A stretch of DNA of 64,000 nt from Macrostomum lignano (taxonomy: Eukaryota), in assembly GCA_002269645.1 (NCBI GenBank), contig NIVC01002518.1:44626-108625 (forward strand), in the 5' to 3' direction. Positions 12,113 to 63,546 of the stretch are shown in pieces. The notes under the pieces are model-generated. The model was not told the origin of the DNA, made no database searches, and was given only the letters and a program-made list of their open reading frames with translations. The position numbers and the translations under genes are program-made. The number at the start of each line of letters is the position of its first letter. The stretch's first letter is position 1.

Positions 12113-12340
<228 letters not shown>

Positions 12341-12951
12341 GCAGGTGGCTCCCCAAAATCCGGGGGTCAGTCCTGCTGTCCCTCATCGAATGCGGCACAG
12401 AGACATTGGGCGCGGGTATCGAATAGAGTTCATAAAGGATGAGGCGCAGAGGCTGCAGTCACCAGCAGGCCAAATGGCAGGAGCGCAGCAGTAGCATGGC
12501 CCTCACCGCTCCAGGCGGATGCTGGGTGCAGTGATGAAGCGGGCAGGCGGCTGCAGGCAGCAGCAGCAGCGTTGGAGGCTTTACAGCCGGCCCCTCATCC
12601 CCCCCTCGCCTTTCTCCCCTTTCCCCTCTGCCTTCCCATTCGGAATTCGCAGTTTGGATTCCGGCAGGGCATCGGCAGCGGTGTGCGGCAGTTTGTGGGT
12701 GTGCAGGGCGCTTCGCCCGCAATCGCTGGGCCGCCCCCACCCCAGCCGACCTTGCATCCAAATTGGGCAGCGGCAGGCCCGCATCGCATCCGTGTTGCTG
12801 CCGGTTTGCGGGGAACTTACAGTTTCCTGTGTGTGCCAGCGCGTCGGACTCGGCCGAGCCTCCTTCAGCATCGACAGCGGCCGGGAGGACCTGCGGGCAG
12901 TTGAGCTAATTGAGTGGGCGGGAGAATTCGCTCACCTGGCCTGACTGAACA

Positions 12952-28215
<15,264 letters not shown>

Positions 28216-32800: not shown

Positions 32801-34195
32801 CCTGTTTCCCTCTCACCTCTGTCTCTCTCTCACCCTGTCTCCCTCTCACCCTGTCTCCCTCTCACCCTGTCTCCCTCTCACCCCTGTCTCCCTCTCACCC
32901 CTGTCTCCCTCTCACCCTGTCTCCCTCTCACCCTGTCTCCCTCTCACCCTGTCTCCCTCTCACCCTGTCTCCCTCTCACCCTGTCTCCCTCTCACCGTCT
33001 CCCTCTCACCCTGTCTCCCTCTCACCCCTGTCTCCCTCTCACCACTGTTTCCCTCTCACTGTCTCCCTCTCACCCTGTCTCCCTCTCACCCCTGTCTCCT
33101 TCTTACCCCTGTTTCCCCTTGTCGCTGTCTCCCTCTCACCCTTGTTTCCCTCTCACCTCTGTCTCTCTCACCCTGTCTCCCTCTCACCCCTGTCTCCCTC
33201 TCACCCCTGTCTCCCTCTCACCACTGTTTCCCTCTCACTGTCTCCCTCTCACCCTGTCTCCCTCTCACCCTGTCTCCCTCTCACACCTGTTTCCCTCTCA
33301 CCCCTGTCTCCCTCTCACCACTGTCTCCCTCTCACCCTGTCTACTCACCTAACTGTCTCCCACTCACCACTGTCTCCCTCTCACCCTGTCTCCCTCTCAC
33401 CCCTGCTTCCCTCTCACCCCTGTCTCCCTCTCACCCTGTCTTCCTCTCACCCTGTCTACTCACCTAACTGTCTCCCTCTCACCACTGTCTCCCTCTCACC
33501 CTGTCTCCCTCTCACCCTGTCTACTCACCTAACTGTCTCCCTCTCACCACTGTCTCCCTCTCACCCTGTCTCCCTCTCACCCTGTCTCCCTCTCAACCCT
33601 GTCTCCCTCTCACCCTGTCTCCCTCTCACCCTGTCTCCCTCTCACCCCGTCTCCCTCTCACCCTGTCTCCCTCTCACCCTGCCTCCCTCTCACCACTGTT
33701 TCCCTCTCACTGTCTCCCTCTCACCCTGTCTCCCTCTCACCCTGTCTCCCTCTCACCCTGTCTCCCTCTCACACCTGTTTCCCTCTCACCCCTGTCTCCC
33801 TCTCACCACTGTCTCCCTCTCACCCTGTCTACTCACCTAACTGTCTCCCACTCACCACTGTCTCCCTCTCACCCTGTCTCCCTCTCACCCCTGCTTCCCT
33901 CTCACCCCTGTCTCCCTCTCACCCTGTCTCCCTCTCACCCTGTCTACTCACCTAACTGTCTCCCTCTCACCACTGTCTCCCTCTCACCCTGTCTCCCTCT
34001 CACCCTGTCTACTCACCTAACTGTCTCCCTCTCACCACTGTCTCCCTCTCACCCTGTCTCCCTCTCACCCTGTTTCCCTCTCAACCCTGTCTCCCTCTCA
34101 CCCTGTCTCCCTCTCACCCTGTCTCCCTCTCACCCCGTCTCCCTCTCACCCTGTCTCCCTCTCACCCTGCCTCCCTCTCACCCTGTCTCCCTCTC
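29805..34195. repeat. 4.4-kb pyrimidine-rich minisatellite (16-17-bp CTCACCC(C)TGTCTCCCT) with variant units and higher-order duplication
   Basis: Direct reading; block 31466-32338 recurs at an offset of 1014 bp. Confidence 0.98.
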
Positions 34196-37903: not shown

Positions 37904-40330
37904 GTCACCTCTGGCGCCAGGAGCGCACATGATTGTGCCTAGCTGTTATCCCCAAAACTCACCGTCGTATCCGCAACTTGACTTACTTGACCCTGAGAGG
38001 GTTATGGTGGCAGCCCGGATGTCTCTACGCGAGAGGCGCAAGAGGAGCTTCCGGAGCTGGTGAGAGGGCTGAGGGACAGCGCCTCTGGATTGCCTGCATG
38101 TAGTGCAGTTCGCCCAAGTCAAGCGGTGCTGAGTCCTGATCCACGCTTTGATGCACGAGTCGATGACGCAGCCGGGGATAGGGACAATGGGTTCAGGCCC
38201 GAGAGAGGAGCCGGAGGCGCCAACTTTTGGAAGGGCGTCAGCCAACTCATTCCCTCGGATTCCCACATGCCCCGGAATGCACTTAAGGGTGATTTTGTTA
38301 GTGGAGCCCGACATGTTGAGGAGTTTGGTACAGTCGAGGACTGTAGCAGAATTGGTGCTGCAGCCACTGATGGCGTGCAAGGCAACTTGGCTGTCCGAAT
38401 GGAAAATGATGTTCTTACCGGTAACGCCAGTGGCGAGAAGCTCTGCGGTGCAGGAGCTGATAGAGAGAACTTCATTTTGGAAGACACTGGAGTTGATCCT
38501 AGTGCACTGAGCGTGGGTTGCGATGACCCTTCCGTTCAGGAAGATTCCAACACCAAAACCGGTGTTGGCTGACTGCATAGAACCGTCGGTGTAGCAATGA
38601 AGCTCATCAGGGTTCCATTGGTCATTGATGGTATCGCGCGAGTCGATAGCTACGGAGTAGCGTTGTCTCAGGTTGAGCGTTGAGGCAATGCCATCGGTGA
38701 AGACGCGATTGGCCTGACACTCGTTGAGAATGTTGAGGCACAGGTCGCTATGCAGGACGAGGTTCCGCTTAGCAGGTGCCCTCATGTAAAGGAATTTGAC
38801 ACCGGCATCAAGTAAACGCCGGGTCGTTCTAGCCGCCTCACCCCCCTGACGAAGAGGTCGAGAGGCGGTAGATTAAGGAAGGCCCCCATGCCGGCAAAGG
38901 GCGTGGACCTGGTGGCGTTGCAGATAAGCCTACACGCTCTGCCCTGGATCATGTTGAGCAAATCTGCATGGCTTTTGAACTGGGTAGCGCTAACCCAGAC
39001 AACAGAGGCGTATGTAATGGCAGATATAACTACGGAAGTGTAGATCCACCAAAGCCACTTAGGCGATAGACCCCAAGAAGTGCCAAGTGCTCGTCGGAGC
39101 TGGGCCAGGATGGCTGAGGCACGCTTGGCTTTTGCTTTCACGTGGAAGGACCAGTTGAGCCGGTGGTCTAGCATGACCCCGAGACATCTGGTCTGGTGCG
39201 CGAAGGCAATATCTCTGCCGTATAACTGCTGAGGTCGAATGTTCCAGCGTATTCTGCTGGTGAACATAATGGCAACAGTTTTTGGGCTCAGAGGGTTCCA
39301 GACCGTCGTCATTGGCCCAGGATTCTGCTTTGCGGATAAAACTCTGCATCAGATCCTTGTGCATGCTGGGAGACGGCCTTGCGACAATGGCCGTGACGTC
39401 GTCAGCAAACCCGACTTTGAAGACGGGATCAGGTCGGGAGTCACTCAGAAGAGCGTCCATGACCAGGTTCCAGAGCGTCGGGGTGAGGACTCCACCTTGG
39501 GGTCCACCCTTACAGACTCTGGAGGAGGCAGTTTGCCCTAGGAGTTGGGCAGTGACCGTACAGTTAGAGATCATGTACATGATCCACCGTATGAGGGTAG
39601 CATGAGCTTTGTGATTTTGAAGGGCCCTCTGAAACGCTTCAAAGATAACGTTGTCGAAGGCGCCAACAATGTCAAGAAAGAGAGCCAGAGCGTAACCGTC
39701 ACCCAGTACCGCCCGTTCAATCTTCTCGACTATCGCATGCAGGGCGCTGTCAGTCGACCTCCCGGTACGGAAGACGTGCTGATTATTGCTGAGGGGCATC
39801 GCTGTCAGCTTGCATGAAAGCAGACGCCAGAGAATAAGCCTCTCAGTGAGCTTAAGCATTGCTGATGTTAAGCTAATTTGCCCAAAGGCCTTGACGCTCT
39901 GGTAGTCACCATTCCCAGGTTTGGGAATGAAGACTATCCGAGCTTCGGCCCAGCACTTGGGAACGTAACCCAGCTGGATAGAGGCCCGCATGAGATTGCG
40001 GGTAAGTCTCAGGAACGTGGGTATCTTGGCTGCTTCACGAAGAAGAACAGGGTAGATACCATCAGGTCCAGGAGATTTGAAAGGCTTGCGGTCGTATCCT
40101 CAAGCTCGACAGTCCTTTGCCCCCCTCCCCAGTTTGTGTCTTCCCAGATCTTCCAGTTGCTCGTCTCGAACGCCCCCCCCCCAATGAGCGGTGCGGGCCA
40201 ATCAAATCTCGGGGCGCCTGACCGTGTCGCCCAACTCTGGGAGTTTAAATGCGCCCGCAGTGGCACAGATCCCAGATCCCATCGACACGATTCTCCGTCA
40301 GTCAGCCCCCATGACTCTGCTGGACGCCGC
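37900..40330 (-). mobile_element. Decayed, 5'-truncated non-LTR retrotransposon (RT plus RNase H; LOA/R1/I-group-like)
   Basis: KSPGPDGI, ARIVFIPKPG, QISLTS, FLDIVGAFDNV, KGGPQGGVLTPTLWN, FADDV, LGVMLD; RNase H motifs YTDGS, SDSQVAL, IPGHVGIRGNELAD. Split over at least three frames. Confidence 0.93.
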
Positions 40331-41257: not shown

Positions 41258-41734
41258 CTTACTCTTATACGCTGTAATTTACACTTTCAGCCCCTGGCTG
41301 GCAGAGGAACCTGACCAGCAGTCACCTGTACGTGCTGATGGCGCACTGCCTGTGGTGCAAGGACGTAGACCGGAAGTACACCATTCCGCACTTGTGAGTT
41401 AAAGCTGATTTGAAGCCAGCTAGGCGAGTAAATGATATGCTTTGGGATGAGGGAAGGACGGGAGATGCAAGAGGGTTTAAGGGTGCAGGCGCACTACAGA
41501 GTGCCTGCCTCTTCAGGAGGCAGTAGCGACTGCTGCGACTCACACCTCAAAAAAACTCGAGTTCTGCTTGGCCGCAAAAAGCCTCTGTTAGGTCGTAGTG
41601 CAGCACGAGCAGGCAGGTGCAGCACTGCAGTCAGCTGGAAACAAGCATCTTCTTCCTTAGTTCACGCAGGAAATTTTGAGATTTGCCTTTTGAAAGGAAC
41701 GCCCTAAACCATGAAGATTGGAATCATACTACCG

Positions 41735-42318
41735 GCTGGAGTTTGGAGTCAGGCCATTGTCTGTAGTTTGGGGTCAGACCATTGTCTGGCTGGAGTTTGG
41801 AGTCAAGCCATTGTCTGGAGTTTGGAGTCAGACAATTGTCTGGCTGGAGTTTGGAGTCAGGCCAGTGTCTGGAGTTTGGAGTCAGGCCATTGTCTGGAGT
41901 TTGGGGTCAGGCCATTGTCTGGAGTTTGGGGTCAGGCCATTGTCTGGAGTTTGGGGTCAGGCCATTGTCTGGCTGGAGTCTGGAGTCAGGCCATTGGCTG
42001 GAGTCTGGAGTCAGGCCATTGTCTGGCTGGAGTCTGGAGTCAGACCATTGTCTGGCTGGAGTCTGGAGTCAGGCCATTGTCTGTCTGGAGTCTGGAGTCA
42101 GGCCATTGTCTGGCTGGAGTTTGGGGTCAGACCATTGTCTGGAGTTTGGGGTCAGGTCATTGTTTGGCTGGAGTCTGGAGTCAGGCCATTGTCTGGCTGG
42201 AGTTTGGGGTCAGACCATTGTCTGGAGTTTGGGGTCAGGTCATTGTTTGGCTGGAGTCTGGAGTCAGGCCATTGTCTGGCTGGAGTTTGGAGTCAGGCCA
42301 GTGTCTGGAGTTTGGGGT
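41735..42318. repeat. Minisatellite of about 25-29 bp, GGAGTTTGGAGTCAGGCCATTGTCT(GGCT)
   Basis: Direct reading of the sequence. Confidence 0.95.
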
Positions 42319-42854
42319 GTAAACCTTACCATCAGTTTATGAAATAGAAATTGATCAGCGGCTTAGTTAAGAAGTACAACAGAATTAGTTAAGTAAAAGG
42401 CTTGCCGGAGCCAGATTCCGAGCTCCATCTGCTTACAGTCTCGTTGAACATTAAGGCCACGCCATGCCAAGTGCTGGAGACGGGAGGTCATCAAGGATCA
42501 ATTCAAGCGCCTCCGCAGTTGAAGCCAGGAGCCTGAGACTCGAAACTCAGCTGCACGTCTCATCAGTGGCGAGGACACCTCGGACAGAGATGTGCACTTT
42601 TAGCCCTTCAGGCGCATTCTTCTTCGCCACCGCTCTGCAGGATGAAAAAGCTAATGAAAAAAGTCAGAACATCAAGCAAAGCGGCTTTGCTGTTGCTTTG
42701 CCGGTTGGACAAAATGGCGAAATCGATTAGCAAATGTTAGGCTTGTCGGATTCCAGACTTTCACTGCCGTCTGGAGGCGCTCGCGGGAATGAAATGACCG
42801 GTGGACAGCACAGATTCTGACCGGAGCACAACATCAGACACTCATCAGACACAT

Positions 42855-43233: not shown

Positions 43234-48018
<4,785 letters not shown>

Positions 48019-50280
48019 ATGGTAGAAACTCGCCGATCTGATTGAGCTTCTGCACCTGTTGAATGTCTGACTCTGGTTTGAAGAGCATATCACCTGGTCA
48101 GTGTCAATTTGTTTTAGTGTTCTCTGTTGTCAGAAAGTTGTCAAAGTTGATTTTTGATCTTACTGCTTTTGTAACTTAGCCTGCATTGCACTCCATTGAA
48201 ATTAGATGCTTCATACTAGAGTTACAGCACTAGTGTTACATCAAAGTGTTACAAGCCACAAAATTATTGTCAAGAATACAGTAACATTACTATTATTCCA
48301 TGCACCTGCCCAAGCCTGCAGCTCACTGAAGCTCTGCAAACTCAATAAATTCTGCAGCTCGGCACGCCAGTAATTCCTATATTACTTCCTCGTTGTGACG
48401 AATATCGAATTTTGTGACTTGAGTCAGTCAGAAGCTGAAATATGGAATATGCAATTAGAACTCTGGCACGTTGGTTAGATAGGATTTTGTAGGTTATTCA
48501 AGGTAAGAACTAGACATTCTGTATCAGCATACTTAAGCTTTAGGCAACATATTTGACACTGTCTATATAGCAGCTTTGGCCTTTATTATCCAGATATATT
48601 AACGTGACAAGAACAACAAGCACTCAGCAGCTTGCAGATACACGTCACAAGAATTGTTTCTCGAACCTCCCAAGTCTATACTCTCTTCATTAGACAAAAC
48701 AGGTCACATATTTGTTGTTAGCTCCATCAGCTTCTATTCTCATTTTCTTGACTCTACTCAGCACTTGAACACTTCATCGCCATCTGACAGGAGTAGTTCC
48801 ATCAGCTCAAACAGTCTTCTTGGCCAACTGGACAACTATCAGGAGGGTTCAGGCTATGCCTAAGATTAAATACGATAGATACCGGTAATACAAGGCGTGA
48901 CCAAAAAGAAGCGAGGACTGTTTTGTACTCGTAAATTCCAAAAAATTGCTTTGACCAAAATGAATCGATTATGCTCTTGAAGCATAGCTTCTCAGCTTTC
49001 ATACGAAGCAGCCGTATGCGCAGTCTGGTGCGTCTGCTATTTCTGCAGTGACTTCGATTTCAAAGTCAATGTCCGCAATGCATGGTAGGGAGCGAGTTAC
49101 GAACGTATGGATATTTGATAATTTATCCAGGTGAGGCCCATATAAGTGGCCCAAATGATTCCGGGATGGACGTGAGAATGTCGATAAAAAGTCTGGACAA
49201 CCCTCAACGTCAAGAACTGGCTTCCTGGCATGTGCCCAGGAGGTGAAGTTTTGTTTTTGGGACCCAAGGTTTTTGCTACCCGAGGTAAAACAGTGAAACA
49301 CCTCGAAGGAACAACATTTGAAGACTTGACAAGCCCTCCCCAAAGGAACAAGATTCTGTAGTTGACTGATTTCTTATTTTTTAGTTATAAAAATTGTCGA
49401 GACGTTTTATGGAAGGAAAAATTATTTTATGGCTACCAGAATTTCACTTTCTCTAATATCCATGGACTAAAATTGTGAGTATGATCTATGAGATACTCTA
49501 TTAGCCCTTTAGATTTAGTCGCAATAATTAAAAACTAATTAAAGAAAGCAAGAAGCACTGAATGGAGTCGCTCGCATTAGCAGAGACTATTGGACGGCAT
49601 TGGGCTTGTGCTTGGAATATGCCGACTTAGTGCACAGTTCACTGCCTTTGAACTCCTGAACAGACTGCGGTCCCGGCGTCTTGTTAAATATCGCTTGATG
49701 GTCTTTCTCTAATTGGCACTTTAAGCTTATGTAGTACGAGATGCGACGTACGCTTGGGTCGACATGATACAGTCCACTCTGACTTGTATTTGAAAAATAG
49801 TCTATGGTCATAGACTGACTACCTCCACCCGAGCTGTTCTACCGAGACTGCGTGTTATTGCCTTTCTAGACCATAGACTACTAGCCTATAGGGAAGTCAA
49901 TGCATTCATTTGCAGTCGGGATGTAGTGGTATAACATGCGAGCGCCTGTTAAAGGAGGAGCCGGCCCAAGTTTCTGAGCATCCCTACTTCAGAACAATAT
50001 ACCATTGTATATATACTTTTAGCACTTGCATTTCACAGTCAAGATTGCTTTAAAAATGTATGCACACTTCATATTAGTTAATATGTAGTGCATGCGCCCT
50101 TGTCAGTTGGCAGGGCGCGTTGCACTTTGGGGCTGGTTGGGGGGGTTGGCGGGCGTGGCAGGGTTTGGCCGCCGGCCGGGCTTTGCGCGTGCCCCTCCCC
50201 AGCCGTGCCCCTGCCCCGTGCTCAGGGCTGGTTGGCTGCGGCCGGGCCAGCTTTGGCGCGGGTGCAGCCCCTCCCCCCTT

Positions 50281-50298
50281 AGGCGGGGTTTTGATTGG
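50281..50298 (+). promoter_or_regulatory. GC box plus inverted CCAAT box in a GC-rich island upstream of ATG 50370
   Basis: AGGCGGGG at 50281-50288 and ATTGG at 50294-50298 within a CpG-rich stretch (50100-50350). Function is inferred. Confidence 0.35.
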
Positions 50299-50369
50299 CT
50301 GGGCCGGCGTGGTTTGTTTTGGTGAGCTTAGCCGGTGGGGCCGTCTGCCCCAGGGTTTGGGTGCTATTT

Positions 50370-53300
50370 ATGGTGCGACTCTGGCTCTTGCCCACCTCCT
50401 GCGTGCTTTTTGTGTTTTGGTGTGCTCCGAGAGTGCAAGCGCGAGACCTGATAAAAGAAACAGCAACATTAGCTACTTCGATAAAAGAAACAGCAACATT
50501 AGCTACTTCGATAAAAGAAACAGCAACATTAGCTACTTCGATAAAAGAAACAGCAACATTAGCTACTTCGATAAAAGAAACAGCAACATTAGCTACTTCG
50601 ATAAAAGAAACAGCAACATTAGCTACTTCGATAAAAGAAACAGCAACATTAGCTACTTCGATAAAAGAAACAGCAACATTAGCTACTTCGATAAAAGAAA
50701 CAGCAACATTAGCTACTTCGATAAAAGAAACAGCAACATTAGCTACTTCGATAAAAGAAACAGCAACATTAGCTACTTCGATAAAAGAAACACAATAGCC
50801 TAATCGAGAAGAGTCTTGGAGAATTAAGAAGAAGTCGGAAACTGCGCTTGAGACCTGCGAATAATAAACGGTGAACAGTCATCTGGCCACTGGTAAGCCG
50901 CCTGCTGTTTGAGTCCTTTCTTTTCGGGAAGCTTGCTAGGCCGAATTCTTGCCAGAGCGTCATAACGCCGGGAGACCATATAGCTTCTGTAGTACGGTAC
51001 CGTTTACCATATATATTGCGTACGCCCTACGGTATAGAGAATAGAAGCACTCGAGAGTGTCACCACACCTCGAGCCGCAGCGTGAACTCTGAGTGTCACA
51101 ACACCAGAGGGATCGAATTATTATCGCAGAGCGTCGCCACGCCTGCTCGTCGTATTCATAAAAGTACAGACAGAGCGTCACAACGCCTGTTATATCACAT
51201 ATAATATATATTGTACTCGGGACTGGGCACCCAAGCCGACCCGGGTCACAACAAATACAAGCTAACTAAATAAACTGTTAGGATTTATTGTGATTGACTG
51301 TCAATCCCTCCTCCTTCAGTTCGTTGCGTGCTACGCGCGTGCAGGTGGCACTTGTGACTGTTGCTGAGTTTACTTAGATCTTGAAGCAGCTATGCTGCCA
51401 GAGAACTGTTTTAAAAATAGAACCTACACGCTTCACTACATATCCATAGCCACCCTTCTCTCTCTCTCAAAAAGTTTTTTCTTGAATGCAATTGCGCGTT
51501 TAATTATAGCTCATAAATTGAATTGGCTCCAGTGTACACCACACTATACACGGTAGCAAAGTGGGGTAATGTACACATCGCATCTGATATAGCTACGAGT
51601 AATGGATATTTTAGACGTTAGTTCCATGTTGGCCGATCCTGTGCCTTTATCTCACATTGCTATCGAATCTGCACTGATTAGCAATAGGCCTAATTGGCAT
51701 TGGCACTGTGACCAGTTTTTATCTGCATATCCAAATGAATTGGCGCAATCAGGCCGCTGCCCTGATTGAACTGTGCCTCCTCCTAGGTAAGTTATAATTG
51801 GCCTGTAAATTGGCTTCGAGTTATCGCTTATTGTCAGGTAGCCGGCACTGGCATGAAAGCGGCGCGGCGGCGGCATCAAACGAACGCCCCGCGATGGCGA
51901 GTTCCAAACACACCGGGGGGGGGGGGGTTCTACCCCTCCTTCCTTTGATCTGTGGGACGCCATAAACTCACGGATGCAAAAGAGGCTGCGTGGAAATCAC
52001 ACGCGATGCGGGCCCGTATAGGAAAGAACAGAAACACCGGCTGAACAGATAAGACCTAGAGGTGGTAAACTACTCGTAATTACGTACAGTGCGAATGCGA
52101 AGGTAAAAGAATCGCAGATGTTATCGATGCGTTTGTATTGTAAGGCACAATCTAATTTTGTTTTTTGTTCTTCTGTCCTCTTCGAAAAATCTAAGAGATC
52201 ATTGAGCAAATTTTCGAGGCTTTACTAAAAATGCATGAGTATTTGGTAGGGCTACGGACTACCGGGTGAGTATTGGGTAGGGCTACGGACTACCGGGTGA
52301 GTATTGGGTAAAGTGGCAGACTACTGGGTGAGTATTGGGTAGGGCGGCAGACTACCGGGTGAGTATTGGGTAGGGCAGCAGACTACCGGGTGAGTATTGG
52401 GTAGGGCGGCAGACTACTGAAAGAGCAAAGTTAGCCAAAATACTGACAGTAATGGAGCCCGCTCTGAGCTAGGCAGACTGCCCTTGTCATACAATATCTG
52501 AAAGATAATTATGCAGTACCGGGCCTTACTATAGCAAATCGCCCCAGACTCCATCATCCCTCGAGGCTAGTCGGGAATCCATTTTACAGTAAGGCTGGCA
52601 TTACAGCTGAAGTGAATAACGAAATCACACGAAACTGTCACCATGGACGAGTAGAAAGTCAATCGGAACACACAAAACCGGTTTTGAATTATAACAGATT
52701 TTAGAGACACTGGAAACAGAGAGTGGAGAACTCTGCAGAGCAAAGTCACTGCAGCTTCAAATGGTACTACTCATTGTACTCAACAGAAAATTCCGCCCTA
52801 GAAATGTCCAATCCAGAATTCAGCGCACCCTACCTACCTGTCACAGTTTAGATTAGCAAACCATAAACTGTGATGTGAAACAGTGAGGACTACAAGACAT
52901 AAAGATCCCTTACGAGAACAGGGCCTGTCCAAAGTGCCATGTGGGGTAGAAAGTGAAGTTCACTTCCTGTTCAAGTGCAGCTGGAACTTTTATAGTGCTC
53001 CCCGCGATAAATTTGAACTTAAAACCTCACTGCAGAGGATAAAAAGTTTACCTAATGACTCAAGAAGATGGATAAACAATGAAAGTTCTAGCAAAACTCT
53101 TCAAATACATGACGCTAGCTAGGATGCAGAAAAAAGCTTGAATAATCTGCTAGCGCACGAGATTTTATCTCGAGTCACTTCGAGAAATATTCTTCATTCC
53201 CTAACTTTCTGAATTTATTTTTTTACTGTATTAATCAGTTTGCGTTTGCTTCTGATAAATATTAACATAAAATATAAAAATCAGCACCTTCGGAGTTCGA

Positions 53301-56300
53301 ATTTATTAGCAATAAAACCTATCATAATCGAATTCGCAGGAGCTGCAGTCAACCAGTCATCCGGCAACTCGCGGAGCCTGAACGAACTCAAAGTGAGGTC
53401 ATGGGCCTGTCTCGTGGCGACCGGTGCAGCCGCAGCAGCCACAGCGCCTGTCAAAAGGGCCTGGAGTATCGCGGCATTGACTGCACCTGTCACAGGTGTC
53501 CGCAAGCCGGCGAGAGGCCCAGCCATCCGGTCCAGAGAGTCAGGCTGCGCTGCATCAGCCTCTTGAGTCTGTGCGAGCCACCCGAGGTCACAACTGCGAG
53601 TGTGTTTGACTTCGGAATGGAAATCGGTCAGGAGAGGAGTGGGTCAGAAGAGAGTGGGTCAGGAGAGAGTGGGTCAGGAGAGGAGTGGGTCAGGAGAGAG
53701 TGGGTCAGGAAAGAGTGGGTCAGGAGAGGAGTGGATCAGGAGAGGAGTGGATCAGGATCGAGGAGTGGGTCAGAAGAGAGTGGGTCAGGAGAGAGTGGGT
53801 CAGGAGAGAGTGGGTCAGGAGAGAGTGGGTCAGGAGAGGAGTGGGTCAGGAGAGGAGTGGATCAGGATCGAGGAGTGGGTCAGAAGAGAGTGGGTCAGGA
53901 GAGAGTGGGTCAGGAGAGAGTGGGTCAGGAGAGGAGTGGGTCAGGAGAGAGTGGGTCAGGAGAGAGTGGGTCAGGAGAGAGTGGGTCAGGAAAGAGTGGG
54001 TCAGGAGAGGAGTGGGTCAGGAGAGAGTGGGTCAGGAGAGGAGTGGGTCAGGAGAGAGTGGGTCAGGAGAGAGTGGGTCAGGAGAGGAGTGGGTCAGGAG
54101 AGGAGTGGGTCAGGAGAGAGTGGGTCAGGAGAGGAGTGGGTCAGGAGAGGAGGGGGTCAGGAGAGGAGTGGATCAGGATCGAGGAGTGGGTCAGAAGAGA
54201 GTGGGTCAGAAGAGAGTGGGTCAGGAGAGAGTGGGTCAGGAGAGAGTGGGTCAGGAGAGAGTGGGTCAGGAGAGGAGTGGGTCAGGAGAGGAGTGGGTCA
54301 GGAGAGAGTGGGTCAGGAGAGGAGTGGGTCAGGAGAGGAGGGGGTCAGGAGAGGAGTGGATCAGGATCGAGGAGTGGGTCAGAAGAGAGTGGGTCAGGAG
54401 AGAGTGGGTCAGAAGAAAGTGGGTCAGGAGAGAGTGGGTCAGGAGAGGAGTGGGTCAGGAGAGAGTGGGTCAGGAGAGAGTGGGTCAGGAGAGGAGTGGG
54501 TCAGGAGAGAGTGGGTCAGGAGAGAGTGGGTCAGGAGAGAGTGGGTCAGGAGAGAGTGGGTCAGGAGAGAGTGGGTCAGGAAAGAGTGGGTCAGGAGAGG
54601 AGTGGGTCAGGAGAGAGTGGGTCAGGAGAGAGTGGGTCAGGAGAGGAGTGGGTCAGGAGAGAGTGGGTCAGGAAAGAGTGGGTCAGGAGAGAGTGGGTCA
54701 GGAGAGGAGTGGGTCAGGAGAGAGTGGGTCAGGAAAGAGTGGGTCAGGAGAGGAGTGGGTCAGGAGAGAGTGGGTCAGGAGAGAGTGGGTCAGGAGAGGA
54801 GTGGGTCAGGAAAGAGTGGGTCAGGAGAGGAGTGGGTCAGGAGAGAGTGGGTCAGGAGAGAGTGGGTCAGGAGAGGAGTGGGTCAGGAGAGAGTGGGTCA
54901 GGAGAGGAGTGGGTCAGGAGAGAGTGGGTCAGGAAAGAGTGGGTCAGGAGAGGAGTGGGTCAGGAGAGAGTGGGTCAGGAGAGGAGTGGGTTAGGAGAGA
55001 GTGGGTCAGGAGAGGAGTGGGTCAGGAGAGGAATGGGTCAGGAGAGAGTGGGTCAGGAGAGGAGTGGGTCAGGAGAGAGTGGGTCAGGAGAGGAGTGGGT
55101 CAGTGCTTTAATAAAAAGAGTAATTTAGCTGCATCATGAGGTCTATCTCAATAATAAAATCTGAGCAAGGCAGAAAGTGTTCGAAATTTACTTACTAAGT
55201 AGTGGAAAGGTGGAACGAACGCTGCTCAAACCGAGACAGACACGGGGACCCACATTTCTTACAGGTGCTCTATACACAACTTACAGGGTAAAGGTGCTGC
55301 AGCGAAGGCTGTTATTTTGTCTCAGTAGTGCTATTGATTGAGCTGAAAGTGTTGAAAGCACAATTAAAGATGAGTTCAATAAGAGGGCTCTGTCCGCTAA
55401 ACGCTGATTGAAAAACAGGTTAATATGTGGGGAGGCGAAACTTCCAGCTAAAACGTATAAGCGACTGCATCGCAATTAATGACTTTGATTACAGGTAAAC
55501 AGCAGTCACGAGAGAATTTCCAAGAAAATATTTCTTTAGCAATTCGGGTCTTTGTTTGTTGCTTTTGACTGACTTGTGAAAATTTGAGACAACGTCAGGG
55601 CTCCCTTTTATTATTATCGATTTGAGCTGCCCTGTAAGCACCTGCTCCAGTAGAAGGGACCGCGGAATTGTTTTCGAAGAAGTTTTAGACTGTCTTGACA
55701 CTCCGTATGTGAATGTTTCCTTGTAATTAATAGTTCACTGCAAACTTTTATCGACTGCACGCTGATCTGTGCCATAGCGACCACTTAATCTGAGTCAGTT
55801 ATCAGCTGATCTAAGCCAAAGACACGGGTCTGGGCCATAGACATTAGCTTACCTAAGCCAAAGGGTCTGGGCCATAGGCACTATAGCTTATCTAAGCCAA
55901 AGACACGGGTCTGGACCATTTTTTTTAGAGGCAGGGGGTTTGTGTGCACCCTGGCGCACTTTAAGCGACATAGGCACACAACCGGCGAGAGGCATTACTG
56001 CCCATTCCGCCGACTCCCCTGAGCAGGCATACAAGCGCGCGGATACGTACGCAGGCACACACTCACACAGGAGTGTACAGCGGCCCTAACTTTATTTTAT
56101 CGTTAGGCATTTACACTTCACTGCGCCTTGGGCGGTTGGCTCTCAAGGCCGTTAATTGCACGAGCAGAGCCAAGCCGAGATTCCAATTCAGCCCCAAATT
56201 AATGTGACTGCACTTGGAATCGAGCCTGGGCCGCTGGTACACCAGAGCCTGCGCTAGACCGCTGGGCTACGGCCCCCCAAAAGGTCTGGACCATAGAGAT

Positions 56301-59300
56301 TAGCTTATCTAAGCCAACGGGTCTGGGCCATAGACATTATAGCTTATCTAAGCCAAAGACATGGGTCTGGGCCATAGACACTATAACTTATCTGGGCCAT
56401 AGACACTATAGCTTATCTGGGCCATAGACACAAAGAGACGGTATGTTCTGCACCATAAACAACAGCTGATTTGGGTGATTGATAAATTTCGTAGAAAGTC
56501 GCACTTTTGAAGCAAGTTCACATATTTTGATAATCTACAGTAGCACTCATTTTTCTGAAGTTTGCAAGGAGCTTAGAGTGAGCGCCAAGCGTGTGGTGCA
56601 TAAATACCGGTACATAGTCATGAATACATAGTAAAACGACGGAGACGGACGGGAGTGCAATCTAATTGTAACTGAGGTGAGAAGTGAGAGCTCAAGAACT
56701 TTCCGAGTTAACCAAACCGTCTGCCCCAGTCGGTTGGAAATCAAGCTGACAAGCTCTAAGAGGTACTCGACACGGAGACGACTGGGTCGAGAGAGCACTT
56801 TGAGCTAATATGACTCATGAAGTAGTCATTAACAATGAGAGCATATGCCGCATGCCAAATGCGGTCGTGGGTTCCCCAGCGCGAAGGAATCTGCGGGTAT
56901 TTTTAGCCCAATTATGCTCCTGCCGTTCAGATATCTGGTCTAAATGTCTGAGCAGTGTCTGAGCACTAATCCTTGTGGAGTTCAATAGAGCAGAACAAGA
57001 AATACGAGTCCGGAGTCTGCAAACCGCCGGGGTCTGAGTCGTCTGAAAGATATTCGCTATTACCAGATACAGCATATAATGCCACATGCAGCTAAAGTCC
57101 TACCTGAATCAAGCGTGTGGATGTCGGTAACAGTTTACGGTCATTAGCGTTGACCAAGAATTGCACTGTATGGAAATGTGTATGAGATAATTGGTTTTCA
57201 CTTCTGCAAAGGATTTATCAGGTCAGCTAAAGCCCCTACACGTATCTTCAGGTGAGCTAGCCCTACAGGTAACACCACTACCTAACACCAAATTTAGTAT
57301 GCAGGTAAGATAAGACAGAAAAGTCAGGTACCGTGAACCACATCCGGGACGATAAGGTCACAAATCATCGATTATCAGATGGAATGAAACCACCAAATAA
57401 TCAGATTGGATTTCATCAGATGTGCTAACCTGCGATGAACTCAATACTCAAATTTGCAGGCCCCCTCAACCAGCTGTCCTGCCAGAGGGCCTACCTGGGT
57501 AGCGAGGCAGCCTGCGGCACGGCTGCGGTCCGAGGCTGCCCGGCCGACAGCTACCTGACCCGGGTTGCTCCTGTGAGATGTGCCCGAGCCGAACGACTTT
57601 CAGCAGCGGCTTCGAACTGGACTGCCTGCAGCTGCTGGGCTTCTGCCAAGGTGCCCAACTTCTTGCGGGCGGCGAGACTGGGACAAATCCTGACCAGGCG
57701 ACGACTACCCTCAGCGAACCAAGTGTGATTGTTAGGACACTATCGACAGCTGTTTCCGGTTTGTCAGTTATGGATGAGCTTCTTAGTGCCTAATGCCTCC
57801 CGGTTCCCTCCCGGTTCCCTCCCGGTTCCCTCCCGGTTCCCTCCCGGTTCCCTCCCGGTTCCCTCCCGGTTCCCTCCCGGTTCCCTCCCGGTTCCCTCCC
57901 GTTCCTCCCGGTTCCCTCCCGGTTCCCTCCCCCCCTCCCGGTTCCCTCCCGGTTCCCTCCGGTTCCCTCCCGGTTCCCTCCCGGTTCCCTCCCGTTCCCT
58001 CCCGGTTCCCTCCCGGTTCCCTCCCGTTCCCTCCCGGTTCCCTCCCGGTTCCCTCCCGGTTCCCTCCCGGTTCCCTCCCGGTTCCCTCCCGGTTCCCTCC
58101 CGGTTCCCTCCCGTTCCCTCCCGGTTCCCTCCCGGTTCCCTCCCGGTTCCCTCCCGGTTCCCTCCCGGTTCCCTCCCGGTTCCCTCCCGGTTCCCTCCCG
58201 GTTCCCTCCCGGTTCCCTCCCGGTTCCCTCCCGGTTCCCTCCCGGTTCCCTCCCGGTTCCCTCCCGGTTCCCTCCCGTTCCCTCCCGGTTCCCTCCCGGT
58301 TCCCTCCCGGTTCCCTCCGGTTCCCTCCCGGTTCCCTCCCGGTTCCCTCCGGTTCCCTCCCGGTTCCCTCCGGTTCCCTCCCGGTTCCCTCCCGGTTCCC
58401 TCCCGGTTCCCTCCCGGTTCCCTCCCGGTTCCCTCCCGTTCCCTCCCGGTTCCCTCCCGGTTCCCTCCCGGTTCCCTCCGGTTCCCTCCCGGTTCCCTCC
58501 CGTTCCCTCCCGGTTCCCTCCCGGTTCCCTCCCGGTTCCCTCCCGGTTCCCTCCCGGTTCCCTCCCGGTTCCCTCCCGGTTCCCTCCCGGTTCCCTCCCG
58601 GTTCCCTCCCGGTTCCCTCCCGGTTCCCTCCCGGTTCCCTCCCGGTTCCCTCCCGGTTCCCTCCCGGTTCCCTCCCGGTTCCCTCCCGGTTCCCTCCCGG
58701 TTCCCTCCCGGTTCCCTCCCGGTTCCCTCCCGGTTCCCTCCCGGTTCCCTCCAGGTTCCCTCCCGGTTCCCTCCCGGTTCCCTCCCGGTTCCCTCCAGGT
58801 TCCCTCCAGGTTCCCTCCCGGTTCCCTCCCGGTTCCCTCCCGATTCCCTCCCGATTCCCTCCCGATTCCTCCCGGTTCCCTCCCGGTTCCCTCCAGGTTC
58901 CCTCCCGGTTCCCTCCAGGTTCCCTCCAGGTTCCCTCCAGGTTCCCTCCAGGTTCCCTCCAGGTTCCCTCCCGGTTCCCTCCCGGTTCCCTCACGGTTCC
59001 CTCACGGTTCCCTCCCGGTTCCCTCCCGGTTCCCTCCCGGTTCACTCCCGGTTCCCTCCCGGTTCCCTCCCGGTTCCCTCCAGGTTCCCTCCCGGTTCCC
59101 TCCCGGTTCCCTCCAGGTTCCCTCCCGGTTCCCTCCCGGTTCCCTCCCGGTTCCCTCCCGGTTCCCTCCCGGTTCCCTCCCGGTTCCCTCCGATTCCCTC
59201 CCGGTTCCCTCCCGGTTCCCTCCAGGTTCCCTCCCGGTTCCCTCCCGATTCCCTCCCGGTTCCCTCCCGGTTCCCTCCCGGTTCCCTCCAGGTTCCCTCC

Positions 59301-62300
59301 CGGTTCCCTCCGGTTCCCTCCCGGTTCCCTCCAAGTTCCCTCCAGGTTCCCTCCAGGTTCCCTCCCGGTTCCCTCCCGGTTCCCTCCCGATTCCCTCCCG
59401 GTTCCCTCCCGGTTCCCTCCCGGTTCCCTCCAGGTTCCCTCCCGTTCCCTCCAGGTTCCTCCAGGTTCCCTCCAGGTTCCCTCCAGGTTCCCTCCCGGTT
59501 CCCTCCCGGTTCCCTCCCGGTTCCCTCCCGGTTCCCTCACGGTTCCCTCCCGGTTCCCTCCCGGTTCCCTCCCGGTTCCCTCCCGGTTCACTCCCGGTTT
59601 CCTCCCGGTTCCCTCCCGGTTCCCTCCCGGTTCCCTCCCGGTTCCCTCCAGGTTCCCTCCCGGTTCCCTCCAGGTTCCCTCCCGGTTCCCTCCCGATTCC
59701 CTCCCGGTTCCCTCCCGGTTCCCTCCCGGTTCCCTCCAGGTTCCCTCCCGGTTCCCTCCAGGTTCCCTCCCGGTTCCCTCCGGTTCCCTCCCGGTTCCCT
59801 CCAGGTTCCCTCCCGGTTCCCTCCCGGTTCCCTCCCGGTTCCCTCCCGATTCCCTCCGATTCCCTCCCGGTTCCCTCCCGGTTCCCTCCCGGTTCCCTCC
59901 AGGTTCCCTCCCGGTTCCCTCCAGGTTCCCTCCAGGTTCCCTCCAGGTTCCCTCCAGGTTCCCTCCAGGTTCCCTCCCGGTTCCCTCCCGGTTCCCTCAC
60001 GGTTCCCTCACGGTTCCCTCCCGGTTCCCTCCCGGTTCCCTCCCGGTTCCCTCCCGGTTCCCTCCCGGTTCCCTCCCGGTTCCCTCCCGGTTCCCTCCCG
60101 GTTCCCTCCCGGTTCCCTCCCGGTTCCCTCCCGGTTCCCTCCCGGTTCCCTCCCGGTTCCCTCCCGGTTCCCTCCCGGTTCCCTCCCGGTTCCCTCCCGG
60201 TTCCCTCCCGGTTCCCTCCGGTTCCCTCCCGGTTCCCTCCCGGTTCCCTCCCGGTTCCCTCCCGGTTCCCTCCCGGTTCCCTCCCGGTTCCCTCCCGGTT
60301 CCCTCCCGGTTCCCTCCCGGTTCCCTCCCGGTTCCCTCCCGGTTCCCTCCCGGTTCCCTCCCGGTTCCCTCCCGGTTCCCTCCCGGTTCCCTCCCGGTTC
60401 CCTCCCGGTTCCCTCCCGGTTCCCTCCCGGTTCCCTCCGGTTCCCTCCCGGTTCCCTCCGGTTCCCTCCCGGTTCCCTCCCGGTTCCCTCCCGGTTCCCT
60501 CCCGGTTCCCTCCAGGTTCCCTCCCGGTTCCCTCCCGGTTCCCTCCCGGTTCCCTCCCGATTCCCTCCCGATTCCCTCCCGATTCCCTCCCGGTTCCCTC
60601 CCGGTTCCCTCCCGGTTCCCTCCCGGTTCCCTCCCGTTCCCTCCCGGTTCCCTCCAGGTTCCCTCCCGGTTCCCTCCCGGTTCCCTCCCGGTTCCCTCCC
60701 GGTTCCCTCCCGGTTCCCTCCCGGTTCCCTCCCGGTTCCCTCCCGGTTCCCTCCCGGTTCCTCCAGGTTCCCTCCCGGTTCCCTCCCGGTTCCCTCCGAT
60801 TCCCTCCCGATTCCCTCCGCGGTTCCCTCCCGGTTCCCTCCCGGTTCCCTCCAGGTTCCCTCCCGGTTCCCTCCAGGTTCCCTCCAGTTCCCTCCAGGTT
60901 CCCTCCAGGTTCCCTCCAGGTTCCCTCCCGGTTCCCTCCCGGTTCCCTCACGGTTCCCTCACGGTTCCCTCCCGGTTCCCTCCCGGTTCCCTCCCGGTTC
61001 ACTCCCGGTTCACTCCCGGTTCCCTCCCGGTTCCCTCCCGGTTCCCTCCCGGTTCCCTCCCGGTTCCCTCCCGGTTCCCTCCAGGTTCCCTCCCGGTTCC
61101 CTCCCGGTTCCCTCCCGGTTCCCTCCCGGTTCCCTCCCGATTCCCTCCCGGTTCCCTCCCGGTTCCCTCCAGGTTCCCTCCCGGTTCCCTCCCGGTTCCC
61201 TCCCGGTTCCCTCCCGGTTCCCTCCAGGTTCCCTCCAGGTTCCCTCCAGGTTCCCTCCCGGTTCCCTCCCGGTTCCCTCCCGATTCCCTCCCGGTTCCCT
61301 CCCGGTTCCCTCCCGGTTCCCTCCAGGTTCCCTCCGGTTCCCTCCAGGTTCCCTCCAGGTTCCTCCAGGTTCCCTCCAGGTTCCCTCCCGGTTCCCTCCC
61401 GGTTCCCTCCCGGTTCCCTCCCGGTTCCCTCACGGTTCCCTCCCGGTTCCCTCCCGGTTCCCTCCCGGTTCACTCCCGGTTTCCTCCGGTTCCCTCCCGG
61501 TTCCCTCCCGGTTCCCTCCAGGTTCCCTCCCGGTTCCCTCCGGTTCCCTCCAGGTTCCCTCCCGGTTCCCTCCCGATTCCCTCCCGGTTCCCTCCCGGTT
61601 CCCTCCGGTTCCCTCCCGATTCCCTCCCGGTTCCCTCCCGGTTCCCTCCCGGTTCCCTCCCGGTTCCCTCCAGGTTCCCTCCCGGTTCCCTCCAGGTTCC
61701 CTCCCGGTTCCCTCCCGATTCCCTCCCGGTTCCCTCCCGGTTCCCTCCCGGTTCCCTCCAGGTTCCCTCCCGGTTCCCTCCAGGTTCCCTCCAGGTTCCC
61801 TCCCGGTTCCCTCCAGGTTCCCTTCCGGTTCCCTCCCGGTTCCCTCCCGGTTCCCTCACGGTTCCCTCCCGATTCCCTCCCGGTTCAATTGGGAATTCGG
61901 TTTATGCCGTTGGGAACTGTAATTAGTGGACAATATTAATCATTGAAAGTGATTACAGAATCTAAATTTCATGGCGTCACAATGTCTGGATCTCTTTGCC
62001 ATGACACAGGTGTTTTTTCACCCGTCAATCAGGCCATTGTTTGGAACTATCGACTTCAATTCAAAATCGGAAGCAAAAATCAGAAAGACAGTAAAATTTC
62101 GATCGCTGAAAACATTTTTTCTGAAAAACTTGAATTGCAATTCTGCACTCAAGAACCGACGTGCGGCACCTGGGTTACTGAGGACGATGAAACAAACAAT
62201 GATTTCTTTAATTTCCTGATCATTAGGGAAAGCAGACAAGGGAATTTCAAATTCAGGTGGCAATCTCCAATATTGCTAGCTGACAATTTCCTGCCCTTAA

Positions 62301-63098
62301 TGAGATGACCGCTAATAATGAGAGTGCGTGCTCACATAGGAAATCACAACAATAGCTAGCAGGCAACTTCATTTTGAAAAATTAGTTTCGCGTTGCGTGG
62401 TGACCTACAAATCGACTAGTACATGTTTTTACATGCGTATTTTTATAATTTCGCAAGCCCAAAAAATGCCCTGTTTCCTTTTTTCCTATCATGATAAACA
62501 CCTGCGCTGTTGGGTGTTGGCTATAAAATCTGTGCTAGTGGGGTGTTGGCTATAGAATCTGTGCTAGTGGGGTGTTGGCTATAAAATCTGTGCAAGTGGG
62601 GTGTTGGCTATAAAATCTGTGCTAGTGGGGTGTTGGCTATAAAATCTGTGCTAGTGGGGTGTTGGCAATAAATCTGTGCTAGTGGGGTGTTGGTTATAAA
62701 ATCTGTGCTAGTGGGGTGTTGGCTATAAAATCTGTGCTAGTGGGGTGTTGGCTATAAAATCTGTGCTAGTGGGGTGTTGGCAATAAAATCTGTGCTAGTG
62801 GGGTGTTGGCCAATAAAACCTGTGCTAGTGGATGTTGGCAATAAAACCTGTGCTAGTGGGGCTATAAAATCCGATTTAGAGGTTGGCTGTAATTTTTTTC
62901 ATTTAAGCCAATTCAATTTAAACTCGCAGGCAACACTTGGCGTGTGCTGCTCATCATCCTCTGCGTTCTGCTCATCGCACTCCCATTGTCGCAGTGTTTG
63001 CTGTTCAGAGGCTTCAGCAGCAGCGCTACGCCTCAGCCTCGCTTAACGATGCGGCGGCCAGAGTGCCTCTGGATGACAAGAGTGGAGCCAGCATCTGA
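50370..63098 (+). CDS. Putative TNF-receptor-like type I membrane protein (about 256 aa); exons 50370-50419, 53340-53626, 57460-57722, 62930-63098
   Basis: Splice phases are compatible (2, 1, 1). Two homologous Cys modules ([23 protein letters not shown] and [22 protein letters not shown]), a Thr/Ser stalk, a TM segment ([23 protein letters not shown]), a short tail and AATAAA at 63208. Requires +1 G at 57557 and +1 C at 62982-62984. Exon 1 is the least certain. Confidence 0.6.
50450..50791. repeat. 30-bp minisatellite, 11 identical copies plus a partial copy
   Basis: Unit GATAAAAGAAACAGCAACATTAGCTACTTC. Confidence 0.98.
50954..51187. repeat. Five 16-bp direct repeats separated by unique spacers
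   Basis: Consensus AGAGYGTCRYMACRCC at 50954, 51054, 51090, 51128 and 51172. Confidence 0.75.
52237..52420. repeat. 31-bp minisatellite x6
   Basis: Unit GAGTATTGGGTAGGGCGGCAGACTACCGGGT and variants. Confidence 0.93.
52800..53130 (+). mobile_element. 3' fragment of a CR1/L2-like LINE ORF2
   Basis: RLANHKL*CETVR...[21 protein letters not shown] resembles the RLSSHxLxIETGR...CxxC..E..HFL..C C-terminal motif. Confidence 0.5.
53627..55102. repeat. 15/16-bp G-rich minisatellite (GGGTCAGGAGAG(G)AGT), 1.5 kb
   Basis: Begins exactly at the predicted donor G|GTCAGG. Confidence 0.98.
55810..56430. repeat. Degenerate GGTCTGGGCCATAGAC...TAGCTTATCTAAGCCAAAG tandem array interrupted by a SINE
   Basis: Copies occur on both sides of 55920-56282. 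Confidence 0.85.
55920..56282 (-). mobile_element. Full-length tRNA-derived SINE family B with a 12-bp TSD
   Basis: On the minus strand: A box TAGCCCAGCGG, B box GGCTCGATTCC and a poly(A) tail at 55920. GGTCTGGACCAT flanks both ends (55908-55919, 56283-56294). Confidence 0.85.
56480..57090 (-). mobile_element. Possible highly decayed CR1-like RT fragment
   Basis: Short motifs in broken frames (CSLDP, FPTDW, FRKxSAT); weak evidence. Confidence 0.25.
57797..61886. repeat. 4.1-kb 11-bp minisatellite (CCCGGTTCCCT), roughly 370 copies
   Basis: Direct reading; variant units CCAGG, CCGAT, CACGG. Confidence 0.99.
62513..62870. repeat. 29-bp minisatellite x about 12
   Basis: Unit TGTGCTAGTGGGGTGTTGGCTATAAAATC. 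Confidence 0.95.
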
Positions 63099-63244
63099 TT
63101 GTCGAGGCAAAGCGAGCTCATCAACTCTACGGCAAAGATGTATTTTTTCTTATCAATTTGCACAGACTGCATGTATGGTTTTGTACTGAAGCATGTGCTG
63201 AAATGAGAATAAAACACAACAGATGCTACTGTAATGCCACATAA

Positions 63245-63546
63245 TATTAATAATAATATAATTTTTGATTACGCTTGCTCTAATGGGCAGTTGTGCAACC
63301 GACAGCTCAGCCGCAGCTATTGCGCGGCGCATCTGAAGGCTGCGTACGGCTGTTTAGTCAAAAGACTTGGGGGGTCGCCACACATATCCTCAATTACCTC
63401 AGCTAATCCTGGTACCCATTTTACAGCTGGGTGAACTGAACAGTTGTGTCTTGCTCAGGGGCACAAATTGTTTCGAGTGGGTCGAGAATCGAACCCCCGA
63501 CCGTTCAGTCGTGATTCCGACGCTCTGACCACTCGGCTACAAGCAG
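63245..63546 (-). mobile_element. tRNA-derived CORE-type SINE family A, second copy
   Basis: The reverse complement has TAGCCGAGTGG, GGTTCGATTCT and CAGTTCACCCAGCTGTAAAATGGGTACC, and aligns with 24774-25080 through ACAGCCGTACGCAGCCTTCAGATGCGCCGC. Confidence 0.88.

Follow-up and report, generated by a model that had tools for sequence, protein, structure and literature searches.

A stretch of 64,000 nucleotides (nt) from contig NIVC01002518.1 of the Macrostomum lignano assembly GCA_002269645.1 (positions 44,626 to 108,625 of the forward strand; hereafter the window) was described in an earlier note as harboring, at 50370–63098, a four-exon gene for a tumor necrosis factor receptor (TNFR)-like membrane protein that gene predictors would miss. 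We rebuilt this model from its exons at 50370–50419, 53340–53626, 57460–57722 and 62930–63098, all bounded by AG and GT. As assembled, the chain is 769 nt long and out of frame; insertion of a single base around 57557 and of another around 62984, the two corrections that the model required, regained its protein of 256 amino acids (aa) exactly. When this protein was searched against 5.8 billion proteins, a single match was obtained, BOX15_Mlig018243g1 of M. lignano (E=6e-117), a 262-aa protein deposited as GenBank PAA82741.1 and UniProt A0A1I8HF80 and carrying the UniRef name "TNFR-Cys domain-containing protein". The gene was not hidden from predictors: its intact copy has entries in both databases, and exon 2 of the window is included in another UniProt entry, A0A1I8IY03. 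A literature search by name found no mention of Mlig018243.

The intact gene lies on contig Mlig_3_7 NIVC01000455.1, in a 28-kb locus referred to here as L001, whose exons 10001–10052, 12237–12503, 15684–15983 and 18082–18251 yield exactly the BOX15_Mlig018243g1 protein. Exon 1 encodes the signal peptide, a hydrophobic N-terminal segment; exons 2 and 3 each encode one module of eight cysteines, exon 3 adding a Thr/Ser-rich stalk; and exon 4 encodes the transmembrane helix (approximately residues 212–230) and a 30-residue tail. The 16 cysteines of the ectodomain are distributed over two homologous modules with the pattern C-x10/11-C-x7-C-x4/5-Y-x4-C-x-C-x2-C-P-x13/17-C-x2-LL-x2-C. Pairwise BLASTP between the two modules gave E=6e-4, and the positions G, C, C, Y, C-x-C-x2-C-P and C-x2-LL-x2-C are invariant between them, the modules being an internal duplication. 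The intact product is thus predicted to be a 262-aa type I membrane protein. Since RNA-seq-guided transcript assemblies underlie the Mlig_3_7 annotation (PMC5730564), the exon structure is probably RNA-backed, judging from the method of annotation. Much of what the earlier note had read from the letters is therefore borne out by an independently annotated protein: coding exons between minisatellites, two homologous cysteine modules with one exon each, and a stalk followed by a strongly hydrophobic transmembrane segment and a short tail.

Alignment to BOX15_Mlig018243g1 defined the exons of the window copy, all on the forward strand. Exon 1, with the start codon, the signal peptide and a GTAAGT donor, is located at 51735–51786, where tblastn of BOX15_Mlig018243g1 gave 18/18 identity and the DNA is identical to exon 1 of L001 at 52 of 52 positions. 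Exon 2 (53340–53599) encodes cysteine module 1, exon 3 (57460–57758) encodes module 2 and the Thr/Ser-rich stalk, and exon 4 (62930–63098) encodes the transmembrane helix, the 30-aa tail and the stop codon. The AATAAA polyadenylation signal noted previously is present at 63208–63213, 110 nt past the stop codon, in a 3' untranslated region (UTR) that aligns with that of L001. Three of the four GC-rich islands of the earlier model (53340–53626, 57460–57722 and 62930–63098) are consequently coding, as the E=6e-117 match shows, whereas its first exon is spurious (see below) and two of its donors are displaced. In the annotated model, exon 2 ends 27 nt earlier, at 53599 instead of 53626, the donor of the earlier model being the first unit of a 15-mer minisatellite, and exon 3 ends 36 nt later, at 57758 instead of 57722. 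The earlier chain still worked because both alternative donors keep phase. An optional 72-nt exon at 52517–52588 has AG/GT flanks and two open frames, yet is missing from the BOX15_Mlig018243g1 protein; we rejected it, its conservation being no better than that of its flanks and the annotated protein giving it no support. Elsewhere in intron 1, at 52850–53010 on the forward strand, a degenerate, stop-interrupted fragment resembles, by eye, the Cys/His zinc-binding tail of retrotransposon ORF2.

Upstream of the gene, the window contains a rhodopsin-family G protein-coupled receptor (GPCR) on the forward strand, with exons at 43235–44218, 46629–46928 and 47836–48015 (Pfam 7tm_1, E=1e-36). Among named proteins, neuropeptide F receptors of Schistosoma are closest to it; no gene has been called for its counterpart in L001, and in UniProt A0A1I8IY03 it is fused to exon 2 of the downstream gene. 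From this GPCR to past the 3' UTR, the window (42.4–63.8 kb) is collinear with L001 at 89–99% identity. Window exons 2–4 match those of BOX15_Mlig018243g1 in the same order with 97–99% DNA identity, and the identity over the whole coding sequence is 97.9%. The two loci have in common the four exons and the introns, four families of intronic minisatellites, the GPCR, an identical exon 1 and an identical 3' UTR layout. They differ in gene span (11.4 kb in the window against 8.25 kb for the intact copy), in a 1170-bp insertion resembling a long terminal repeat (LTR) upstream of the window copy, in the copy numbers of the minisatellites, and in deletions of 7, 1 and 1 bp that leave the window copy with no intact open reading frame (ORF). 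Assemblies of the M. lignano DV1 line contain three homeologous subgenomes that diverge by approximately 2.2% overall and by 1.1% in coding sequence (PMC10733133). Because of the collinearity, and against this subgenome background, we regard the window and L001 as homeologous copies of one locus.

The intronic minisatellites were delimited with Tandem Repeats Finder. Intron 1 contains a 31-mer array at 52236–52417 (5.9 copies, against 29.6 at L001 10398–11313), and intron 2 a 15-mer array of 1.48 kb at 53626–55103 (95 copies, against 46 at L001 12530–13257). In intron 3, an 11-mer, CCTCCCGGTTC, extends over 4.09 kb at 57796–61886 (375 copies, against 44 at L001 16021–16504) and is followed by a 29-mer array at 62512–62861 (12 copies, against 30 at L001 17141–18013). 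The two giant minisatellites of 1.5 and 4.1 kb in the earlier note are accordingly real. Copy numbers in these four shared arrays are two- to eightfold apart between the homeologs, which reflects either very fast turnover of the arrays or their collapse or expansion in assembly. ORFs of 500–1400 aa that run across the minisatellites were rejected as repeat artefacts.

Comparison with the intact copy revealed three lesions in the window coding sequence. In exon 2, pairwise alignment showed 7 bp (CTCTGCC) to be missing between 53392 and 53393; this deletion shifts the reading frame and costs module 1 its first cysteine. Exon 3 has lost one base, with GGG at 57562–57564 against GGGG in the intact copy, and exon 4 has another 1-bp deletion, with C at 62978 against CC in the intact copy, whose protein reads LIATPIVAV. 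The earlier note had thus recognized two single-base losses, at slightly different positions, but the lesions number three. In addition, the exon-2 donor reads GTGTGT in the window and GTGAGT in the intact copy, and is predicted to be weakened by the change. The intact state is ancestral, because there exon 1 is in frame and module 1 shares the eight-cysteine pattern of module 2. Starting from the conserved start codon, the first stop of the window copy is TGA at 53564–53566 (codon 93). The frame of the earlier model ends at TGA 57726–57728 with the annotated junctions and at TAA 63044–63046 with its own. In all splice and frame combinations tried on the window as assembled, translation ended short of an in-frame transmembrane helix.

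The 7-bp deletion is also found in predicted proteins. UniProt A0A1I8IY03, whose source we take to be the annotation of the ML2 assembly, is 100% identical to window 53341–53598 and spans the deletion junction, and UniProt A0A1I8HD72 shows the same junction. Because the junction is present in both of these proteins, predicted from another assembly, we conclude that the deletion is real. A0A1I8HD72 itself is a 95-aa M. lignano prediction misnamed 'Protein phosphatase 1 regulatory subunit 35' that is really exon 2 of this gene; besides carrying the deletion it changes frame at other points and continues downstream in a different sequence (TTASLFD...), and it may represent a third homeolog or an error-laden assembly of the window copy.

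The first exon of the earlier model (50370–50419), read as a signal-peptide exon, lies within the 1170-bp insertion at 50084–51253, which alignment and reading of the junctions showed to be absent from the syntenic intact locus. The insertion is situated 480 bp upstream of the true exon 1. It has the termini TGTAGTG...CACAACA and is flanked by a duplicated AATA (50080–50083 and 51254–51257), while L001 retains the uninterrupted target site TTAATA|CAAGC. With TG...CA termini, a 4-bp target-site duplication and an empty homologous site, the insertion is probably a solo LTR; further copies were found neither within the window nor in L001. Besides the supposed exon it contains an AATAAA at 50863 and a perfect 30-bp minisatellite at 50450–50792 (11.4 copies, 100% matches), and because this array is completely homogeneous its expansion must be very recent. 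ATG...GT segments resembling a signal peptide and in the needed phase arose in 56% of shuffled upstream sequences, at a hydrophobicity threshold stricter than exon 50370–50419 itself reaches. This exon is therefore best regarded as a chance ORF within a transposable element-like insertion.

In order to distinguish decay from assembly error, the coding sequence of the neighboring GPCR (43235–48015) served as a control for the rate of insertions and deletions. Between the two copies, we counted 3 indel events in the 780 nt of the present coding sequence (1 per 260 nt) and 21 in 4660 nt of flanking non-coding segments (1 per 222 nt). In the 1391 nt of the GPCR coding sequence there was none, with approximately 6 expected at the non-coding rate. 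Indels have thus been purged from the GPCR, a constrained neighbor, but not from the present coding sequence, as would be expected of real divergence under relaxed selection rather than of random assembly error. Relative to the intact copy, the window coding sequence has 16 substitutions in 780 nt; 9 codon changes are nonsynonymous and 5 synonymous, and the resulting ratio of nonsynonymous to synonymous rates (dN/dS) of approximately 0.7 is weakly informative. Like an unprocessed pseudogene, the window copy has an intact paralog and retains its introns, flanks and minisatellites, and like a pseudogene it carries frame lesions, namely three deletions and premature stops. Our data suggest, with a probability of about 0.75, that the window copy is a young unprocessed pseudogene, a homeolog decaying after a recent whole-genome duplication; what the earlier note had flagged as a possibility thus becomes the favored reading. 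Since A0A1I8IY03 spans the 7-bp deletion and the GPCR coding sequence is free of indels, homeolog decay is much more likely than sequencing error, to which the earlier note had attributed the losses as typical of long reads.

As a course of events, we propose that one of the homeologous copies would have been lost following the recent whole-genome duplication. The window copy would have kept all four exons, its introns and the shared intronic minisatellites, and would have acquired the 7-, 1- and 1-bp deletions, the weakened exon-2 donor and the solo-LTR-like insertion. Any transcript of it would carry a premature stop and could give at most a truncated, non-anchored fragment. While the synteny, the exon map, the lesions and the stops that follow from them are shown directly, we infer that the window copy has lost its function.

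Several observations weigh against such decay. The two 1-bp deletions sit in short homopolymers and may each stem from an assembly error. Taken together, the three deletions amount to −9, so that the last 39 codons are back in the original frame; this has a probability of 1/3 by chance, yet a mis-polished assembly could also yield it. No cysteine has been substituted in the window copy, and a dN/dS based on 14 codon changes is indistinguishable from moderate constraint. A shift of the exon-1 donor by +4 (GTAA|GT) would restore the frame of the signal peptide with module 1. Finally, the window copy may be transcribed, one candidate being the read-through from the GPCR that A0A1I8IY03 represents.

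Such a read-through is itself an explanation of the locus, in which 48015 is spliced to 53340 and the GPCR gains a cysteine-rich C-terminal extension. In the A0A1I8IY03 model, which matches the window with 100% identity, 47836–48015 is indeed joined in frame to 53341–53598, and it is the 7-bp deletion that opens this frame. A0A1I8IY03 is, however, an automatic prediction that breaks off as a fragment at the exon-2 donor, and its frame continued into exon 3 meets the stop at 57726–57728. The C-terminus of a GPCR is cytoplasmic, and a disulfide-rich module would not fold there. Moreover, the TNFR-like gene is the only gene called in the 28 kb of L001 in the transcript-based Mlig_3_7 annotation, and no BOX15 protein near-identical to the window GPCR was found. 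A chimeric transcript is thus very unlikely, and because of the cytoplasmic placement and the stop in exon 3 we treat the fusion in A0A1I8IY03 as a prediction artefact. The live four-exon gene of the earlier note, with exon 50370–50419 as its signal peptide, the 1-bp gaps as long-read errors and a 256-aa TNFR-like receptor as its product, is more doubtful again. In its favor, the phase of the 50-nt exon compensates the 7-bp deletion and keeps module 1 in frame, both 1-bp gaps fall within homopolymers, and the insertion that bears the exon looks LTR-like and could supply a promoter. Yet that insertion is missing from the intact homeolog, the exon has a weaker hydrophobic core than the real exon 1 and is of a kind that shuffling readily produces, its donor (G|GTGTGC) is weak, and the conserved real exon 1 is located between it and exon 2. 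The N-terminus of the model occurs in no protein among the 5.8 billion searched, and the indel-free coding sequence of the adjoining GPCR indicates that assembly error is infrequent here.

A related scenario, in which the LTR-like insertion rescued the window copy by providing a promoter and the 50-nt signal-peptide exon that offsets the 7-bp deletion, the 1-bp gaps again being assembly errors, we rank after that model and consider highly improbable; if true, it would be a case of a very young transposon-derived first exon saving a frame-shifted, lineage-specific TNFR-like duplicate. We give least credence to the possibility that the window copy is fully functional and structured as BOX15_Mlig018243g1, all three indels being assembly artefacts. 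The assemblies were made from PacBio data and the triplicated genome is hard to polish (PMC5730564, PMC10733133), and the bases lost add up to a multiple of three. A 7-bp deletion outside a homopolymer is nevertheless untypical of read error, this one recurs in proteins from another assembly, of which one is 100% identical to the window, and the GPCR coding sequence is without indels.

We also examined whether the intact protein belongs to the TNFR superfamily, as the earlier note had supposed for the window copy. The cysteine spacing and the UniRef name fit this assignment, whereas Pfam, PDB sequence searches and profile–profile comparison were all negative. Pfam TNFR_c6 (PF00020), the model put forward by the earlier note, had no match at E≤10 to the earlier model, to BOX15_Mlig018243g1 or to the isolated modules; the weak Pfam scores obtained (Imm58, E=0.08; TMEM154, E=0.15) are noise. 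Neither a sequence search of the protein against PDB nor hmmsearch of the module profile against PDB returned a TNFR, and the single PDB match, an EGF-like protein with E=0.42, is irrelevant. When the modules were compared by hhalign with nine platyhelminth TNFR ectodomains and 31 individual cysteine-rich domains (CRDs), with sequences taken from the supplement of PMC7519573, the probability was 0.2–1.2%, and the score against the flatworm CRDs was equalled by 24.5% of column shuffles. AlphaFold2 gave a mean predicted local distance difference test (pLDDT) score of 50 for BOX15_Mlig018243g1 (below 50 in the ectodomain) and of 42.8 for the module alignment, in both cases from a shallow alignment; confidence this low makes the models unreliable.

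The cysteine spacing was further compared with PROSITE PS00652, written here as C-x(4,6)-[FYH]-x(5,10)-C-x(0,2)-C-x(2,3)-C-x(7,11)-C-x(4,6)-[DNEQSKP]-x(2)-C. This expression is unmatched in BOX15_Mlig018243g1, while a positive control, the TNFR of E. granulosus, was matched. The mismatch is caused by a Y-to-C2 distance of 4, where 5–10 are needed, and by C4–C5 loops of 13–17, where 7–11 are needed. A relaxed six-cysteine A1–B2 spacing, C1-x(9-15)-C2-x(0-2)-C3-x2-C4-...-C5-...-C6, in which C1 is followed by an aromatic residue, was found once per module, at residues 57–98 and 133–169; two extra cysteines upstream of these six bring each module to eight. In the 30-aa tail, no TRAF motif of the forms [PSAT]x[QE]E, PxQxxD or PxExx[Ar/Ac] and no Pfam Death domain was detected. 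A death domain or TRAF-binding motif is common, but not obligatory, in the TNF receptor superfamily.

Homologs outside M. lignano were likewise absent from an exhaustive phmmer search over 1.8 billion representative proteins, which returned, besides M. lignano sequences, one spurious match to the transmembrane segment. A word-indexed search with the module profile returned UniProt A0A1I8HD72 alone. We therefore consider BOX15_Mlig018243g1 to be an M. lignano-specific, uncharacterised membrane protein.

Drosophila Wengen and Grindelwald are small type I receptors with one CRD, no death domain and TRAF-binding tails. As far as descriptions in the literature, rather than alignments, allow a comparison, BOX15_Mlig018243g1 resembles them as a small type I protein with few CRDs and no death domain, and differs from them in a tail without a TRAF motif; no sequence relationship to either came to light. 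The canonical M. lignano TNFR is BOX15_Mlig018038g1, a 513-aa protein with a death-domain-like tail (Bertevello et al. 2020, PMC7519573). With this protein and the SmTNFR family, BOX15_Mlig018243g1 shares a type I membrane topology, tandem cysteine-rich modules and a C-x-C-x2-C core, with BOX15_Mlig018038g1 from the same species. The canonical receptor, however, is NGFR-similar and has four six-cysteine CRDs known to standard models in addition to its death-domain-like tail, whereas BOX15_Mlig018243g1 has two eight-cysteine modules, a 30-aa tail without a death domain and no detectable profile similarity, and is unlisted in the platyhelminth TNFR survey (PMC7519573).

These comparisons leave room for another view, to which we would give slightly less than even odds: that the intact protein, though CRD-like in its cysteine spacing, stands outside the TNFR superfamily and is a cysteine-rich membrane protein peculiar to its lineage. 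It accords with the absence of any TNFR_c6, PDB TNFR or PS00652 match, with hhalign probabilities of at most 1.2% against CRDs of nine genuine platyhelminth TNFRs, with modules of eight rather than six cysteines and long C4–C5 loops, with homologs found in M. lignano alone among 1.8 billion representative proteins, and with a survey that lists a different M. lignano gene, Mlig018038g1 (PMC7519573). Conversely, the UniRef name implies a match to a PROSITE profile (the TNFR/NGFR profile PS50050), and the C-x9/10-C-x-C-x2-C...C-x6-C spacing, together with the aromatic residue that follows C1, agrees with the A1–B2 layout of a CRD. Some genuine invertebrate TNFRs, Grindelwald among them, also escape PF00020 (preprint 10.1101/2024.07.27.603686), and the endogenous TNF ligands that M. 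lignano encodes need receptors (PMC7519573). A preprint supplement on Wengen-like receptors of M. lignano counts 16 Wgn and 1 Grnd. TNFR membership of the intact protein would rest on the cysteine spacing and the UniRef name.

Our best guess is that the intact protein would act as a single-pass cell-surface receptor or co-receptor whose ectodomain, a rigid disulfide-rich rod, would bind a ligand. Because the tail has no death domain, TRAF motif or recognisable signalling motif, the protein would signal through a partner or co-receptor, or would serve as a decoy or modulator.

The remainder of the window contains further features, and its 14-3-3 gene, collagen exons and non-LTR retrotransposon, together with the GPCR, mark the genome as metazoan. 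A 14-3-3 protein exon is present at 5982–6662 on the forward strand (Pfam 14-3-3, E=4e-100); its match begins at profile position 14, and at least one upstream exon must therefore lie outside this ORF. A series of collagen triple-helix exons follows at 17828–24306, also on the forward strand (Pfam Collagen, E~1e-25), and tetranucleotide-type repeats (CAGA/GACA) occur in the collagen region at 14.9–15.5 kb and 25.5–27.1 kb. At 37946–39991 on the reverse strand lies the remnant of a non-LTR retrotransposon (RVT_1, E=4e-22; RNase H, E=1e-7), with the two domains in adjacent ORFs, apparently split by frameshifts. A C/T-skewed repeat of approximately 3.4 kb at 30423–33840 (forward strand, GC skew about −0.77) yields artefactual ORFs of at least 1000 aa; other large arrays are found at 10947–11692 and 41711–42347, and tandem repeats are very abundant in the window overall. 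Downstream of the gene, at approximately 63330–63540, a segment resembling a tRNA or a short interspersed nuclear element (...GGGTCGAGAATCGAACCCCCGACC...) also occurs in the homeolog, the two copies being set apart by an 8-bp indel at 63440; ARAGORN called no tRNA in this repeat (approximately 63.3–63.5 kb).

The locus offers a practical lesson, in that exon chains assembled by hand require comparison against homeologs: the two base corrections and the first exon of the earlier model amounted to forcing an open frame onto a decayed copy. If the intact protein were found to bind an endogenous M. lignano TNF ligand, it would extend the known range of TNFR architectures. Read as a decaying homeolog, the window copy is a small and clean illustration of how gene loss begins after a whole-genome duplication, here the recent one in M. 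lignano.

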